Below, one piece after another: positions 22,787 to 31,598 of a stretch of DNA of 64,000 bases; the stretch's first letter is position 1, and every line of letters begins with the position of its first letter. The notes under the pieces were generated by a model. The model saw only the letters and a list, made by a program, of their open reading frames with translations, was not told the origin of the DNA and made no database searches. The stretch is from Schizochytrium sp. TIO01 (taxonomy: Eukaryota > Protista > Bigyra: Labyrinthulomycetes): NCBI GenBank assembly GCA_004764695.1, contig SMSO01000014.1, positions 4,040,845-4,104,844 of the forward strand, in the 5' to 3' direction. The position numbers were made by a program, and so were the translations under genes.

Positions 22787-25700
22787 TTAGGGTTTAATCC
22801 ATTCGAAAATGTAAGGGCCCAGCAATCCCAATGATTCACTAAAGGCAACGATTAAAGCTTCCAATATATCAAGCTCTACTTTCTGCGTAGCAAGAAATTC
22901 CTCTTTCGAGCTCTGCTCACCATTACTGCTAGCAAGCAGACTCTGTGCAAAACGACCGACTTTCACTGAAGATGGCATAGAAAGTGCATTGTTTACAGCA
23001 TGTATACAACCAAGCTCACGAGAGATCTGCTCAAGACTTGTCCTTCTTGTCTTTGCATAATAAATCTCTTCATTCAATTTCAGCTCCCTCTGTCCTTCAT
23101 GGCTCAATCTTAATCTAAGAATTAGCAGACCAAATAGCATCATCTCCGTTCGTCAGTTAACAGTTTCACGTCATTTAAAGGTACCCACAGTACTGCCAGT
23201 ACAGTTTCATTTATTCTCTGATGTTATCATGCTCTCTATTAGATCCACACTCAACCGAACAAACAATTCCACAACAAACTTGCATTGGCGCGAAGAAAAA
23301 CATCGACAAAACAACACACTAGACAACCCACGACGCAACCAACCAACAAAGCAAGGATCATGTACAAAAACGTCTTTGAGCTGCGGTGTTGCGTAGACAA
23401 CTTACTTTAATTCTGCCAACGACCAGTTCACTTTCAGCGCCGCAGCCACTGCCTTGGCGCCCTCGTCGCCAATATTGTTGTCTTCAAGACTGTCGATTTG
23501 ATTGAATGATGGCAAGAAAAACATTACATTACATTGCAATGCATTACATTGGATACATGCATGGACGTGAGTGATCTAGGTTGGCTTTCAGCATTTATCT
23601 TTGTTGTGTTGTCATTTTGCTCTTTGTTCGATTGATATATACTCACTCAAACAGACAACTCATCCATCCATCAAACAAACAAGCGATTGCATAAACTTGC
23701 AAATCAACACCCACCCACCCAACAAACAACAAACCAAGCATCATGTACAAACAAGTCCACGAGCTGCGGTGTTGCGTAGACAACTTACGATAGTGATGTC
23801 AGCGACCGGTTCTCTTTCAGCGCCGCAGCCAGTGCCTTGGCGCCCTCTGAGCCGATATTGTTTCTATTAAGACTGTCGATTTGATTGAATGATGGCAAGC
23901 AATACATTACACGTTAAATATTACAATAGGTGCACGCATGCATGCATGGACGTGAGTGATCTAGGTTGGCTTTCAGCATTTATCTTTGTTGTGTTGTCAT
24001 TTTGCTCTTTATTCGATTGATGTATACTCACTCAAACAGACAACCCATCCATCCATCAAACAAACAAGCGATTGCATAAACTTGCAAAACAACACCGACC
24101 CACCCACCAAACAACAAACCAAGCATCATGTACAAACAAGTCCATGAGCTGCGGTGTTGCGTAGACAACTTACTCAAGTGATGTCAGCGACCGGTTCTCT
24201 TTCAGCGCCGCAGCCACTGCCTTGGCGCCCTCTGAGCCGATATCGTTCCACTGAAGACTGTCGATTTGATTGAATGATGGCAAGCAATACATTACACGTT
24301 ACATATTACAATAGATGCAATAGATGCACGCATGCATGCATGGACGTGAGTGATCTAGGTTGGCTTTCAGCATTTATCTTTGTTGTGTTGACATTTTGCT
24401 CTTTGTTCGATGGATGTATACTCACTCAAACAGACAACTCATCCATCCATCAAACAAACAAGCGATAGCATAAACTTGCAAAACAACACCGACCCACCCA
24501 CCAAACAACAAACCAAGCATCATGTACAAACAAGTCCACGAGCTGCGGTGTTGCATAGACAACTTACTTGAGTGATGTCAGCGACCGGTTCTCTTTCAGC
24601 GCCGCAGCCACTGCCTTGGCGCCCTCTGAGCCGATATTGTTGCTTCTAAGACTGTCGATTTGATTGAATGATGGCAAGCAGTACAATACACGTTACATAT
24701 TACAATAGATGCACGCATGCATGCATGGACGTGAGTGATCTAGGTTGGCTTTCCGCATTTTGTCTTTGTTGTGTTGTCATTTTGCTCTTTGTTCGATGGA
24801 TGTATACTCACTCAAACAGACAACTCATCCATCCATCAAACAAACAAGCGATTGCATAAACTTGCAAAACAACACCGACCCACCCACCAAACAACAAACC
24901 AAGCATCATGTACAAACAAGTCCACGAGCTGCGCTGTTGCGTAGACAACTTACTCAAGTGATGTCAGCGACCGGTTCTCTTTCAGCGCCGCAGCCACTGC
25001 CTTGGCGCCCTCTGAGCCGATATTGTTGTAGGAAAGACTGTAGATTTGATTGAATGATGGCAAGCAATACATTACACGTTACATATTACAATAGATACAC
25101 GCATGCATGCATGGACGTGAGTGATCTAGGTTGGCTTTCAGCATTTATCTTTGTTGTGTTGCCATTTTGCTCTTTGTTCGATGGATGTATACTCACTCAA
25201 ACAGACAACTCATCCATTCATCAAACAAACAAGCGATTGCATAAACTTGCAAAACAACACCGACCCACCCACCAAACAACAAACCAAGCATCATGTACAA
25301 ACAAGTCCATGAGCTGCGTTGTTGCGTAGACAACTTACGTTAGTGATGTCAGCGACCGGTTCTCTTTCAGCGCCGCACCCACTGCCTTGGCGCCCTCTGA
25401 GCAGATAAAGTTGCTTCTAAGACTGTAGATTTGATTGAATGATGGCAAGCAATACATTACACGTTACATATTACAATAGATGTACGCATGCATGCATGGA
25501 CGTGAGTGATCTAGGTTGGCTTTCAGCATTTATCTTTGTTGTGTTGTCATTTTGCTCTTTGTTCGATGGATGTATACTCACTCAAACAGACAACTCATCC
25601 ATCCATCAAACAAATAAGCGATTGCATAAACTTGCAAAACAACACCCACCCATCCACCAAACAACAAACAAAGCATCATGTACAAACAAGTCCACGAGCT

Positions 25701-28700: not shown

Positions 28701-31598
28701 AACAGACAACCCATCCATCCATCAAACAAACAAGCGATTGCATAAACTTGCAAAACAACACCGACCCACCCACCAAACAACAAACCAAGCATCATGTACA
28801 AACAAGTCCATCAGCTGCGCTGTTGCGTAGACAACTTACGATAGTGATGTCAGCGACCAGTTCTCTTTCAGCGCCGCACCCACTGCCTTGGCGCCCTCTG
28901 AGCCGATTTTGTTGCGTTCAAGACTGTCGATTTGATTGAATGATGGCAAGCAATACATTACACGTTACATATTACAATAGATGCAATAGATGCACGCATG
29001 CATGCATGGACGTGAGTGATCTAGGTTGGCTTTCAGCATTTATCTTTGTTGTGTTGTCATTTTGCTCTTTATTCGATTGATGTATACTCACTCAAACAGA
29101 CAACCCATCCATCCATCAAACAAACAAGCGATTGCATAAACTTGCAAATCAACACCGACCCACCCACCAAACAACAAACCAAGCATCATGTACAAACAAG
29201 TCCACGAGCTGCGGTGTCGCATAGACAACTTACGATAGTGATGTCAGCGACTGGTTCTCTTTCAGCGCCGCAGCCACTGCCTTGGCGCCCTCTGAGCCGA
29301 TATTGTTCCACGAAAGACTGTCGATTTGATTGAATGATGGCAAGCAATACATTACACGTTACATATTACAATAGATGCACGCATGCATGCATGGACGTGA
29401 GTGATCTAGGTTGGCTTTCAGCATTTATCTTTGTTGTGTTGTCATTTTGCTCTTTGTTCGATGGATGTATACTCACTCAAACAGACAACTCATCCATCCA
29501 TCAAACAAACAAGCGATTGCATAAACTTGCAAACCAACACCGACCCACCCACCAAACAACAAACCAAGCATCATGTACAAACAAGGCCACGAGCTGCGGT
29601 GTCGCATAGACAACTTACGATAGTGATGTCAGCGACCGGTTCTCTTTCAGCGCCGCAGCCACTGCCTTGGCGCCCTCGTCGCCGATATTGTTGTAGGAAA
29701 GACTGTAGATTTGATTGAATGATGGCAAGCAATACATTACACGTTACATATTACAATAGATACACGCATGCATGCATGGACGTGAGTGATCTAGGTTGGC
29801 TTTCACCATTTATCTTTGTTGTGTTGCCATTTTGCTCTTTGTTCGATAGATGTATACTCACTCAAACAGACAACTCATCCATCCAGCAAACAAACAAGCA
29901 ATAGCATAAACTTGCAAATCAACACCGACCCACCCACCAAACAACAAACCAAGCATCATGTACAAACAAGTCCACGAGCTGCGGTGTCGCATAGACAACT
30001 TACGATAGTGATGTCAGCGACTGGTTCTCTTTCAGCGCCGCAGCCACTGCCTTGGCGCCCTCTGAGCCGATATTGTTCCACGAAAGACTGTCGATTTGAT
30101 TGAATGATGGCAAGCAATACATTACACGTTACATATTACAATAGATGCACGCATGCATGCATGGACGTGAGTGATCTAGGTTGGCTTTCAGCATTTATCT
30201 TTGTTGTGTTGTCATTTTGCTCTTTGTTCGATGGATGTATACTCACTCAAACCGACAACCCATCCATCCATCAAACAAACAAGCGATTGCATAAACTTGC
30301 AAATCAACACCCACCCACCCACCAAACAACAAACCAAGCATCATGTACAAACAAGTCCACGAGCTGCGGTGTTGCGTAGACAACTTACGATAGTGATGTC
30401 AGCGACCGGTTCTCTTTCAGCGCCGCAGCCAGTGCCTTGGCGCCCTCTGAGCCGATATTGTTTTTTCGAAGACTGTCGATTTGATTGAATGATGGCAAGC
30501 AATACATTACACGTTACATATTACAATAGATGCAATAGATGCACGCATGCATGCATGGACGTGAGTGATCTAGGTTGGCTATCAGCATTTTTCTTTGTTG
30601 TGTTGTCATGTTGCTCTTGTTCGATGGATGTATACTCACTCAAACAGACAACTCATCCATCCATCACATCCATCCATCAAACAAACAAGCGATTGCATAA
30701 ACTTGCAAAGCAACACCGACCCACCCACCAAACAACAAACCAAGAATCATGTACAAACAAGTCCACGACCTGCGGTGTTGCGTAGACAACTTACTCAAGT
30801 GATGTTAGCGACCGGTTCTCTTTCAGCGCCGCACCCACTGCCTTGGCGCCCTCTGAGCCGATATCGTTCCACTGAAGACTGTCGATTTGATTGAATGATG
30901 GCAAGCAATACATTACACGTTACATATTACAATAGATGCAATAGATGCACGCATGCATGCATGGACGTGAGTGATCTAGGTTGGCTTTCAGCATTTATCT
31001 TTGTTGTGTCGTCATTTTGCTCTTTGTTCAGAGCATAATCAAGCAAGCAAGCAAGCAAGCAAGCAAGCAAGCAAGCAAGCAAGCAAGCAAGCAAGCAAGC
31101 AAGCAAGCAAGCAAGCAAGCAAGCAAGCAAGCAAGCAAGCAAGCAAGCAAGCAAGCAAGCAAGCAAGCAAGCAAGCAAGCAAGCAAGCAAGCAAGCAAGC
31201 AAGCAAGCAAGCAAGCAAGCAAGCAAGCAAGCAAGCAAGCAAGCAAGCAAGCAAGCAAGCAAGCAAGCAAGCAAGCAAGCAAGCAAGCAAGCAAGCAAGC
31301 AAGCAAGCAAGCAAGCAAGCAAGCAAGCAAGCAAGCAAGCAAGCAAGCAAGCAAGCAAGCAAGCAAGCAAGCAAGCAAGCAAGCAAGCAAGCAAGCAAGC
31401 AAGCAAGCAAGCAAGCAAGCAAGCAAGCAAGCAAGCAAGCAAGCAAGCAAGCAAGCAAGCAAGCAAGCAAGCAAGCAAGCAAGCAAGCAAGCAAGCAAGC
31501 AAGCAAGCAAGCAAGCAAGCGAGCGTCTTAACTTACTTCAGTGTTGTACCATTCTGAAGCTGTTCAAGAGCAGCGACAACACGTGGGTGGTCTGACAT
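22787..31598 (-). CDS. Gene A: multi-exon RI/NLRC3-type LRR protein with 20 one-repeat exons (~689 aa) and no recognisable signalling domain
   Basis: Exon 1 is 31537-31598 (MSDHPRVVAALEQLQNGTTL, then GTAAGT). Twenty 84-nt CAG|exon|GTAAGT exons have low coordinates 30795, 30389, 30004, 29619, 29234, 28840, 28455, 28061, 27675, 27275, 26890, 26504, 26118, 25724, 25339, 24954, 24568, 24174, 23789 and 23406. Consensus xLxxNxIG(S/D)EGAKAVAAALKENRSLTSL; all are open and phase 2. Terminal exon 22787-23114 (LRLSHEGQRELK...EWIKP) is in frame. Confidence 0.88.
23300..31030. repeat. Tandem array A: 20 units of ~385-406 bp (intron plus LRR exon)
   Basis: Near-identical units with exon-to-exon spacing of 383-406 bp. 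Confidence 0.97.
31040..31520. repeat. (AAGC)n microsatellite, about 120 units, inside intron 1 of gene A
   Basis: Perfect tetranucleotide run, lying just inside the exon-1 donor site. Confidence 0.97.

Follow-up and report, generated by a model that had tools for sequence, protein, structure and literature searches.

How can twenty units that are almost identical in their introns and in most of their coding sequence differ strongly at a few codons? The question is raised by array A, located on the minus strand at 23406-30878 of the 64,000-nt stretch of Schizochytrium sp. TIO01 DNA analysed here (the window, to which all coordinates refer). The array is a tandem repeat with a period of 385 (19.8 copies, 23338-31029) and contains 20 LRR exons of 84 nt, each encoding one 28-residue RI-like LRR. 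All 20 exons are preceded by AG and followed by GTAAGT, none contains a stop, and all conform to L-x-x-N-x-I-G-(S/D)-E-G-A-K-A-(V/L)-(A/G)-A-A-L-K-E-N-x-S-L-T-S-L with a 28-codon period. The introns between them are 299-322 nt long and in phase 2, and their position splits the variable motif into x5 on one side and x7, x8 and x10 on the other.

Read on the minus strand, the five residues after each acceptor are exactly those listed for the 20 units in the first-pass annotation. With the residue of the split codon at the donor given after the slash, they are, in gene order, LQWND/D with a loop Ser (exon 1, 30795-30878), LRKNN/S (exon 2, 30389-30472), LSWNN/S (exon 3, 30004-30087), LSYNN/S with a loop Asp (exon 4, 29619-29702), LSWNN/S (exon 5, 29234-29317), LERNK/S (exon 6, 28840-28923), LSWNN/S (exon 7, 28455-28538), LERNN/D (exon 8, 28061-28144), LQDNL/S (exon 9, 27675-27758), LFGND/S (exon 10, 27275-27358), LNRNN/N (exon 11, 26890-26973), LQWND/S with a loop Asp (exon 12, 26504-26587), LYGSA/V (exon 13, 26118-26201), LFGNN/D with a loop Asp (exon 14, 25724-25807), LRSNF/T (exon 15, 25339-25422), LSYNN/D (exon 16, 24954-25037), LRSNN/N (exon 17, 24568-24651), LQWND/D (exon 18, 24174-24257), LNRNN/S (exon 19, 23789-23872) and LEDNN/N with a loop Asp and a divergent scaffold end, KVNWSLAEL (exon 20, 23406-23489).

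The array is likely to be the LRR domain of an intact, spliced, LRR-only gene composed of a head exon, the 20 one-LRR exons and a 109-codon tail, a judgement made jointly with the overall explanation given below. A start, 21 GT-AG introns and a stop are all present in the germline sequence. The proposed first exon (31537-31598, minus strand) starts with the ATG at 31598-31596 and comprises 20 codons (MSDHPRVVAALEQLQNGTTL) and 2 nt, followed by GTAAGT. Its sequence reads without a signal-peptide-like hydrophobic stretch, and the gene product is probably cytosolic. The genome contains at least 40 copies of the head module, and loose ends of the LQNGATRL type, similar to the end of the head exon, are joined to array exons in RNA-type contigs. 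The last ~150 nt of the first intron (30879-31536, minus strand) are standard unit intron. This intron also contains a (CTTG)~121 microsatellite (31040-31524), whose length is not the same in the three copies of a paralogous array that was duplicated recently. The proposed terminal exon (22787-23114, minus strand; stop at 22787-22789) has 109 codons, with the frame and acceptor placed from the sequence, and showed no Pfam match. An RNA-type contig (X19) spans 22772-23103 with no differences, and a loose end at 23116 in an RNA-type contig lies within 2 nt of the terminal-exon acceptor. The terminal exon occurs at least 40 times in the genome, and three of these copies, at other loci, match it with 99-100% identity. 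The splice joints were taken from assembled contigs of public runs, in which cross-matches between paralogues would mimic variation. Two RNA-type runs (X17 and X15) contain a spliced joint from 27358 to 27675 with CT..AC ends (GT..AG on the minus strand), which is absent from the DNA run X1; canonical joints occur in RNA-type runs only.

A single exon matches Pfam LRR_6 (PF13516) with 21.7 bits (E=1.8e-4; gathering cut-off 23.4), and a phmmer search of the PDB matched RI-like LRR proteins (E=1.4e-8). In the AF2 model of a relative, the thraustochytrid ROCO protein P0012 (pLDDT 44 overall and 65-82 in the LRR part), motif positions 3-7 form the strand, x8-N-x10 forms the following loop and the helix starts from near position 13. 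The best fold matches of the P0012 LRR model are ribonuclease inhibitor and the NLRP LRRs. The variable codons are x5, x7, x8 and x10 of LxxLxLxxNx, as had been proposed, and are predicted to lie in or beside the beta-strand of the concave face. The earlier placement of these codons on or beside the concave face thus agrees with the strand and loop of the model, although the model is that of P0012 and not of the array-A protein; the term ligand-facing would follow from the motif and this relative. The concave beta-sheet and rim are the usual binding surface of RI-like LRRs, and the family may have a binding function and an immune-like role. The repeats share with the LRR domains of RI and NLRP/NOD proteins the 28-residue period, the LxxLxLxxNxIG(D/S)xGAxxLAxAL pattern and the alternating strand/helix solenoid. 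However, RI and NLR repeats are not nucleotide-identical among themselves, introns included, whereas the array A units nearly are, and gene A lacks NACHT or any other effector domain, as well as Roc-COR, in the Pfam search. A separate Roc-COR-TIR ORF with its own stop lies upstream of gene A (35205-37754).

The array sits between subtelomeric 18S (17733-19520) and 5S (47876-47994) rRNA genes, with a (CTAAC)n telomere tract at 1-323 of the window. Array A is part of a family that comprises at least 40 genes and several hundred to ~1000 84-nt exons in an Aurantiochytrium limacinum-like genome, and many LRR arrays of the family are likewise located between subtelomeric 18S and 5S rRNA genes. Array A matches the description of LORE-TEARS Group 0, a ~385-bp subtelomeric unit between the 18S and 5S genes of a genome that is ~62-64 Mb in size and has TTAGG telomeres (bioRxiv 10.1101/2023.06.15.545109). 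In that paper the 385-bp repeat is a spacer without similarity to GenBank sequences, anonymous but with a possible role in chromosome-end maintenance, and G-quadruplexes are reported in some LORE-TEARS. The DNA element is the same as array A; the difference is that the units are read here as an LRR gene, with exons and introns, and no paper reading the Group 0 unit in this way was found in the literature searched. The published description would favour a non-coding satellite whose open frame arose by chance and whose variable stretch is under no constraint. This reading is extremely improbable, being for practical purposes refuted by the open exons, the LRR matches, the RNA-type joints and the conserved head and tail exons that flank the arrays. 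A harvest of 345 family exons from 14 contigs showed the same coding constraint. All 345 are 84 nt long and read with the split after the second codon position (phase 2), all have AG/GT boundaries (a harvest criterion), and none contains a stop, whereas 61 stops would be expected at the variable codons. The matches to solved RI-like proteins and to LRR_6, below its gathering cut-off, also argue against a satellite.

An alignment of the 20 units of array A showed where the diversity lies. The mean pi is 0.566 at 12 variable exon sites (nt 5-10, 14-16 and 82-84), compared with 0.045 at the 72 other exon sites and 0.047 over 301 intron columns. The variable sites differ from the introns with p=3e-13 and from the other exon sites with p=1e-10, while scaffold and intron diversity do not differ (p=0.74; Mann-Whitney tests), in line with the first-pass annotation of near-invariant introns and scaffold around variable codons. 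The 12 sites hold 68% of the exon diversity. In addition, nt 23-25 in the IG(S/D)EG loop carry a linked three-base dimorphism, TCA/GAC (Ser/Asp). The residues D/S/N/V/T reported for the split codon at the donor are exact, but the variable stretch there is 3 nt long (82-84) rather than 2, since nt 82, the synonymous third position of the Leu codon before the split codon, belongs to the stretch. The scaffold codons of the 385-bp units, their synonymous sites and the introns are about 95-100% identical, and scaffold diversity is the same at third as at first and second positions. The equal uniformity of scaffold and introns and of third and other codon positions indicates that the likeness of the units results from homogenisation rather than from protein-level constraint. 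The diversity is thus kept against a strong homogenisation of the rest of the unit, as had been suggested.

These contrasts bear on whether the variable codons are merely free to drift while purifying selection holds the rest, with no selection for diversity. Surface x positions of LRRs tolerate most residues, and the scaffold variants have an omega-like ratio of ~0.8-0.9, so that protein-level selection looks weak overall. However, the amino-acid sites of the scaffold are no more uniform than its synonymous sites or the introns, and homogenisation, being the source of this uniformity, would have erased neutral variation at the variable codons too. In the single-step haplotype network, 138 edges are non-synonymous and 16 synonymous, against an expected synonymous-to-non-synonymous ratio of 1:3.9, which gives an omega-like ratio of 2.2 at the variable codons (p=8e-4) and 2.6 in the first 259 exons, both from saturated, non-independent comparisons. 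The dN/dS ratio at the variable codons, which had been put forward as a check, is likewise elevated (1.8-2.1 by NG86), with the same saturation and non-independence and with recombination that violates the assumptions of site models. The residues at x7, x8 and x10 are biased in composition, with many S, G, Y, W, R, N, D, E and Q and few aliphatics or Pro. Together with the lack of stops, these results make relaxed constraint alone unlikely. The non-synonymous excess and the absence of stops appear compatible with the strong diversifying selection proposed earlier, which may be the cause of the diversity at the x positions.

The multi-base, tightly localised differences could also suggest targeted hypermutation by a cytidine-deaminase-like or DGR-like error-prone mechanism. 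The synonymous site nt 82 varies along with its neighbours (pi 0.67), which would fit such a mechanism. However, diversity does not exceed the background (pi 0.07-0.08) at the synonymous sites nt 4 and nt 13, which lie beside or within the 5' patch. True nt 82 changes are rare, and minor 3' haplotypes retain the nt 82 state of the parent haplotype; the diversity of this site probably marks three old haplotypes (CTC-AA, CTT-GA and CTA-TC). The ts/tv ratio is uniform, with 0.60 at variable sites, 0.63 in the scaffold and 0.51 in introns. The 131 exon pairs that agree at all 189 nt outside the variable sites have a bimodal distribution of variable-site distances: 0 in 56 pairs, 1-2 in only 4 and at least 3 in 71. 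Recurrent variable types use a single codon pair each (YG 13/13, RS 12/12, SY 11/11), indicating that they were copied and not re-invented. A diversity-generating retroelement was rejected as a candidate, as the variable sites and introns have the same ts/tv, the AAC codon within the variable patch is invariant and the only reverse transcriptase in the window belongs to a copia-type retroelement ORF (6637-11619). With regard to DGR hallmarks, ts/tv (an overall ratio, not an adenine-specific tally) showed no distinct mutational spectrum in the variable sites. The targeted mutagenic process considered in the first-pass annotation is thus disfavoured and very unlikely.

The units are instead a fine mosaic. 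An identical 69-nt scaffold is common to 62 exons from 12 contigs, which carry 56 distinct variable strings. Linkage fades within tens of bases: of the exon pairs that agree in the 5' patch, only 46% also agree in the 3' patch. Three copies of an 11-exon paralogous array differ at 13 sites over ~4.3 kb, and 5 of these differences lie in variable sites and constitute two whole-patch swaps among 33 exon copies. Whole-patch swaps in such recent duplicates indicate gene conversion. The templated half of the earlier proposal is partly right in that templated copying acts; the process looks like ordinary ectopic gene conversion that shuffles existing patches and makes no new ones.

Whether the exchange might be programmed was considered separately. 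A high-rate templated cassette exchange between subtelomeric LRR units, comparable to lamprey VLR assembly or pilin/VSG-type conversion, perhaps G-run-aided, could be frequent enough for cells of one clone to differ. The whole-patch swaps within otherwise almost identical arrays, the very fine grain of the mosaic and the subtelomeric location of many arrays beside rDNA would fit. So would a G-run motif, GGTGGGTGGGT(C/G)GG, on the coding (minus) strand at 23710-30729, which occurs in 18 of the 19 internal introns of array A and has 20 matches in the window against 0.03 expected. This motif is a possible G-quadruplex, and a role in recombination would be speculative. However, there are only two swaps in 33 exon copies, all genes are present in complete, spliced form in the germline, and the variable-to-intron per-site ratio of ~18 in the triplicate is near the ratio of the family diversities, which is what conversion without bias from donors within the family would produce. 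Programmed exchange is thus given only a small probability. VLR genes of lampreys and hagfish are incomplete in the germline and somatically assembled. With these genes and with VSG and var families the array shares a constant LRR scaffold, variable concave-face residues, many donor cassettes and templated copying, and with the subtelomeric VSG and var families also a position that favours ectopic exchange. The array-family genes, known here from germline sequence, differ in being complete and spliced; a germline-incomplete gene of the VLR type was rejected for array A, given its start, 21 GT-AG introns and stop, with joints in RNA-type runs.

Plant NLR/Cf-type clusters have hypervariable solvent-exposed xxLxLxx residues and undergo unequal crossing-over and gene conversion between paralogues. 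Array A would resemble them in both respects, but plants exchange whole genes with LRRs in large exons, whereas here the exchanging unit is one exon with its intron, under much stronger homogenisation. The nearest precedent comes from brown algae, with their one-LRR-per-exon ROCO genes; array A is an analogue of that family, not a member. In Ectocarpus and Saccharina, one-LRR-per-exon ROCO genes and LRR-only genes have 72-nt exons encoding 24-residue plant-specific-type LRRs, with selected sites 15, 17, 19 and 20, corresponding to x3, x5, x7 and x8 (PMC3341825, PMC11378527). Common to both are the stramenopile lineage, one LRR per exon, equal-length exons, phase-2 introns, tandem exon duplication and shuffling, LRR-only beside LRR-Roc-COR genes, and, at the concave-face x positions of LxxLxLxxN, positive selection or, in array A, hypervariability with putative positive selection. 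In contrast, array A has 84-nt exons with 28-residue RI-like repeats, its introns split the variable motif and hardly differ among at least 40 genes, many arrays lie between subtelomeric 18S and 5S rRNA genes, the neighbouring ROCO ORF has a TIR domain at its end, and gene A is without Roc-COR.

The explanation that we consider likely is a germline repertoire whose units are homogenised through unequal crossing-over and gene conversion while diversifying selection acts on the strand and loop positions x5, x7, x8 and x10. The 385-bp exon and intron units would evolve in concert, and unequal crossing-over with short-tract ectopic gene conversion would keep scaffold codons, synonymous sites and introns equally uniform. 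Diversity would persist at four or five codons per repeat, namely x5, x7, x8, x10 and the loop Ser/Asp, where variants may be favoured, or their erasure disfavoured, because the side chains would line the concave beta-sheet and rim. Ordinary point mutation, with an excess of non-synonymous changes, would supply new variable states, and existing states would be copied and re-assorted as small patches through gene conversion, the outcome being different binding surfaces on a constant scaffold. The near-identical units with variable surface codons would thus be the product of concerted evolution and selection rather than of a special mutation machine.

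The array-A gene is built from a 385-bp tandem unit, present in 19.8 copies at window positions 23338-31029 (Tandem Repeats Finder). On the minus strand, each unit contains an 84-nt exon, located after ...cgacag and before gtaagttgtc, and an intron of 299-322 nt. The introns are all in phase 2 and the exon lengths are all multiples of three, and each of the 20 exons of array A (23406-30878, minus strand) encodes the 28-residue leucine-rich repeat (LRR) L-x-x-N-x-I-G-(S/D)-E-G-A-K-A-V-A-A-A-L-K-E-N-R-S-L-T-S-L followed by a split codon. The exons were searched one by one. A single exon matches Pfam LRR_6 with an E-value of 1.8e-4, slightly below the cut-off for one repeat, and solved ribonuclease inhibitor (RI)-like LRR proteins with E-values down to 1.4e-8. 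The head exon (31598-31537, minus strand) reads MSDHPRVVAALEQLQNGTTL plus 2 nt and is followed by GTAAGT, with no signal-peptide-like sequence at the gene start. The first intron accommodates a (CTTG)~121 microsatellite (31040-31524; (CAAG)121 on the other strand), whose position recurs upstream of paralogous arrays and whose length varies among three otherwise near-identical array copies. The tail exon, which starts at 23114 and ends with the stop codon at 22787-22789 on the minus strand, belongs to no Pfam family. A G-run motif, GGTGGGTGGGT(C/G)GG, is located ~85 nt 3' of each donor on the coding (minus) strand between 23710 and 30729. Of the 19 internal introns, 18 contain it, and the window as a whole has 20 matches where 0.03 would be expected; the motif may form a G-quadruplex. 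Scans of the introns for tRNAs and Rfam families found nothing.

The 20 pentapeptides and split-codon residues listed in the first-pass annotation match the minus strand exactly. Comparisons of the array-A units showed a mean nucleotide diversity of 0.566 at the 12 variable sites (exon nt 5-10, 14-16 and 82-84), 0.045 at the 72 other exon sites and 0.047 at 301 intron columns. The variable sites thus diverge beyond the introns (p=3e-13), whereas the scaffold and the introns are alike (p=0.74), confirming the hypervariability of these codons far beyond chance. A wider harvest from the window and the fetched loci, defined only by the scaffold anchor and AG/GT boundaries and covering part of the family, yielded 345 exons on 14 contigs. 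These exons contain no stop codon, against 61 predicted at the variable codons from position-specific base frequencies. One identical 69-nt scaffold is shared by 62 exons on 12 contigs, which carry 56 different variable strings with a mean difference of 8.1 of 15 sites. The loop codon at nt 23-25 (e.g. 30854-30856) is TCA (Ser) in 147 and GAC (Asp) in 87 of the first 259 harvested exons. All three bases differ between the two states and intermediates are almost absent, so that the codon resembles a balanced dimorphism of old standing at the helix N-cap.

The variable residues are x5, x7, x8 and x10 of L-T-S-L-x5-L-x7-x8-N-x10-I-G-(S/D), together with the loop residue. Their structural setting was examined on P0012, a 1115-residue LRR-Roc-COR protein from a public JGI source. 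It was found with a neighbouring ORF of 849 codons with Roc, COR-A and TIR domains (35205-37754, minus strand), which lies 3' of a second LRR exon set (38399-46768). Most other matches of the same search are thraustochytrid (Hondaea) proteins, and P0012 was treated as a thraustochytrid relative. The best relatives of the ORF come from Hondaea fermentalgiana; they have LRRK- or NOD-like annotations, and several carry LRR_6 repeats. In the predicted fold of P0012, the LRR part has a pLDDT of 65-82, the strand comprises motif positions 3-7, x8-N-x10 forms the next loop and the helix starts near position 13. Foldseek comparisons of the model gave ribonuclease inhibitor complexes and NLRP LRR domains as the top matches. 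Positions x7, x8 and x10 are occupied by S, G, Y, W, R, N, D, E and Q, with few aliphatics or prolines, a composition that would suit an exposed binding surface. The proposal that the variable codons are the ligand-facing x positions is borne out as far as they are x positions of the motif, in or beside the strand in the model; that they contact a ligand is an inference.

The first-pass annotation had ascribed the variability to diversifying selection or to a targeted templated or mutagenic process. Mutagenesis aimed at the variable codons is disfavoured by three patterns. Diversity is 0.07-0.08 at two synonymous third positions, those of the invariant codons for Leu (nt 4, adjoining the 5' patch) and Asn (nt 13, inside it), and is similar at the scaffold synonymous sites. 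The transition to transversion ratios are similar at variable sites (58:96), in the scaffold (60:95) and in the introns (109:215). Recurrent variable types use one codon pair each (YG, TATGGC in 13 of 13; RS, AGAAGC in 12 of 12; SY, TCCTAC in 11 of 11). The patterns indicate that regional hypermutation is absent and that the recurrent types are copies. Comparisons over 189 non-variable sites, made up of the scaffold and 60 nt from each intron, identified 131 exon pairs identical at all of them, with a variable-site distance of 0 in 56 pairs, 1-2 in four and 3-11 in 71 (saturated mean distance, 7.2 of 12). Judged from these pairs, flank identity is decoupled from variable-site identity. The near-empty class of 1-2 differences counts against gradual divergence, because gradually diverging recent duplicates would populate it.

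Single-base links among 198 distinct three-codon haplotypes comprise 16 synonymous and 138 non-synonymous steps, against an expectation of 1:3.9. The corresponding omega-like value is 2.2 (p=8e-4; 2.6 in the first 259 exons), compared with ~0.8-0.9 for scaffold variants. The NG86 estimate at the variable codons is 1.8-2.1, but it is saturated and its dS of 0.55 is unreliable for that reason. By these counts, new steps at the variable codons are mostly amino-acid changing. At the 3' patch, ~72% of the exons have CTC-AA (Asn), CTT-GA (Asp) or CTA-TC (Ser), and the minor states are one-step non-synonymous derivatives that retain the nt 82 of the parent. Thus, the high diversity of the synonymous nt 82 would mark three old lineages rather than fast mutation. 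Of the exon pairs with the same 5' patch, 46% also agree at the 3' patch (against a baseline of 18%) and 71% at the loop codon (against 43%); no association was found between the 3' patch and the loop codon. The intron markers of array A are also mosaic. These associations indicate that patches re-assort over tens of bases. The neighbour-conditioned comparison of focal exons comprised only eight pairs.

The locus at C13:7301926 was considered as a positional homologue of array A and rejected: its tail exon is 100% identical, but its 21-exon array is unrelated and the similarity ends inside the last intron. Recent duplicates were therefore compared only on other arrays. An 11-exon LRR gene has three near-identical copies, two forming an inverted pair ~40 kb apart on contig C30 (5479267-5483132, plus strand, and 5521119-5517254, minus strand) and one on contig C5 (1793846-1797711, plus strand). 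The copies differ at 13 sites over ~4.3 kb, mainly through swapped patches at the variable sites. Two 3' patches were replaced, CAA by ATA in one and CGA by ATC in the other, the latter along with a scaffold base located 23 nt upstream. Of the intron changes, four are clustered inside 96 nt and three are single. Per site, variable changes are ~18 times as frequent as intron changes (Fisher p=4e-5). An excess of this size is expected from unbiased conversion, because family donors differ from recipients almost solely at the variable sites; the family-wide diversities of 0.46-0.75 (variable) and 0.03-0.05 (intron) give a ratio near the same value. In a C13/C30 array pair of seven exons, 0.3% of the intron sites but none of the 84 variable sites differ, a comparison of low power in which no runaway change is apparent.

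Gene conversion would then both homogenise the units and re-assort the patches. A templated process does exist, and it looks like ordinary patch-re-assorting gene conversion. However, conversion alone cannot hold a twelve-fold higher diversity at 12 sites, and selection for difference or against erasure is therefore the simplest addition. The variability is best explained by diversifying selection that opposes homogenisation, a reading that we consider probable. A programmed, high-rate exchange, in which subtelomeric, rDNA-adjacent LRR cassettes swap binding-face patches by conversion, possibly stimulated by G-quadruplexes, is improbable. The cells of one clone would then carry different receptor repertoires, and the system, if real, would represent the protist equivalent of VLR assembly or of antigenic-variation-type gene conversion, serving recognition rather than evasion.

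Transcript evidence was taken from short assembled contigs (60-330 nt) of four public runs, in which paralogue contigs would mimic heterogeneity. The canonical joint 27358->27675, connecting exons 9 and 10, is present in contigs of the presumed-RNA runs, and the best DNA run has no spliced joints. Many further joints in the RNA-type contigs combine the standard scaffold with other variable letters and represent paralogue transcripts. Several joints that skip 1-10 exons fit more than one place or paralogue, because 11 of the 20 array-A exons (those ending in ...CTATC) have identical 3' sequences across the 20-30 nt anchoring the joint; alternative splicing is not claimed. At 23490 and 24651, head-exon-like ends (…LLRNGATKL and …LQNGATRL) are fused directly to exon-20-like and exon-17-like LRR exons in RNA-type contigs; these are either short paralogues or transcripts skipping most of an array.

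Across the genome (64 Mb, 37 contigs), the unit matches at least 372 times, and the head and tail exons at least 40 times each. The head module, which comprises the upstream region and the first exon (31525-32072), is common to at least 40 loci at 80-95% identity. A 57-nt block in it (32016-32072) recurs with 100% identity at four other loci, and the conserved sequence may be a promoter or 5' UTR element. The 357-nt tail exon (22787-23143) is 99-100% identical at C13:7301926, C6:20130 and C8:198998. Homogenisation seems to act on heads, arrays and tails as modules of their own. The surroundings include a (CTAAC)n telomere tract (1-323; C13:4040845 onward), 371-bp satellites, a 28S-5.8S-18S unit (13995-19520) and a 5S gene (47876). 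A copia-type retroelement ORF of 1660 codons (6637-11619, plus strand; RVT_2 with weak gag and integrase matches) is inserted between the 28S gene and the telomere-side satellites. The telomere tract is internal to contig C13 (7.46 Mb), and opposite-orientation LRR arrays and a tail exon are located just before it (C13:4006060-4021289). Thus, two chromosome ends seem to meet in C13, telomere to telomere.

The closest known parallel is the ROCO/LRR family of brown algae, in which each LRR is encoded by one 72-nt phase-2 exon, with exon shuffling and alternative splicing, LRR-only genes are a possible reservoir, and the positively selected sites are x3, x5, x7 and x8, modelled on the concave face (PMC3341825, PMC11378527). 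The thraustochytrid family works alike but is not a member. Its repeats are RI-like and 84 nt long, an intron splits the variable motif, the introns of at least 40 genes are homogenised as well, many arrays adjoin subtelomeric rDNA, and gene A is without Roc-COR. P0005, a Hondaea fermentalgiana LRR-Roc-COR-TIR protein of 1099 aa, has N-terminal LRRs with a near-constant scaffold (GAKALADALAKNSSLQTL) and changes at x5, x7, x8 and x10. As the pattern is alike in another genus, a constant scaffold with changing x positions is probably general in thraustochytrids.

In a literature search, spacer repeats of the LORE-TEARS type were nowhere re-read as genes. The published "chromosome-end spacer repeats" can now be read as coding exons, several hundred to about a thousand of them, which alters the annotation and study of subtelomeres in a model thraustochytrid. 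Families of recognition receptors whose LRR scaffold is constant and whose concave face varies occur in plants, animals and brown algae, and the array-A family would extend them to labyrinthulomycetes. The form is unusually clean: ~12 of the 385 bases per unit escape homogenisation, and the introns and synonymous sites provide an internal neutral control. The family is well suited to measuring the balance of gene conversion and selection. Labyrinthulomycetes are osmotrophic marine protists with persistent giant-virus-like elements, and with this family one could ask whether a large germline repertoire of LRRs serves defence in a unicellular eukaryote.
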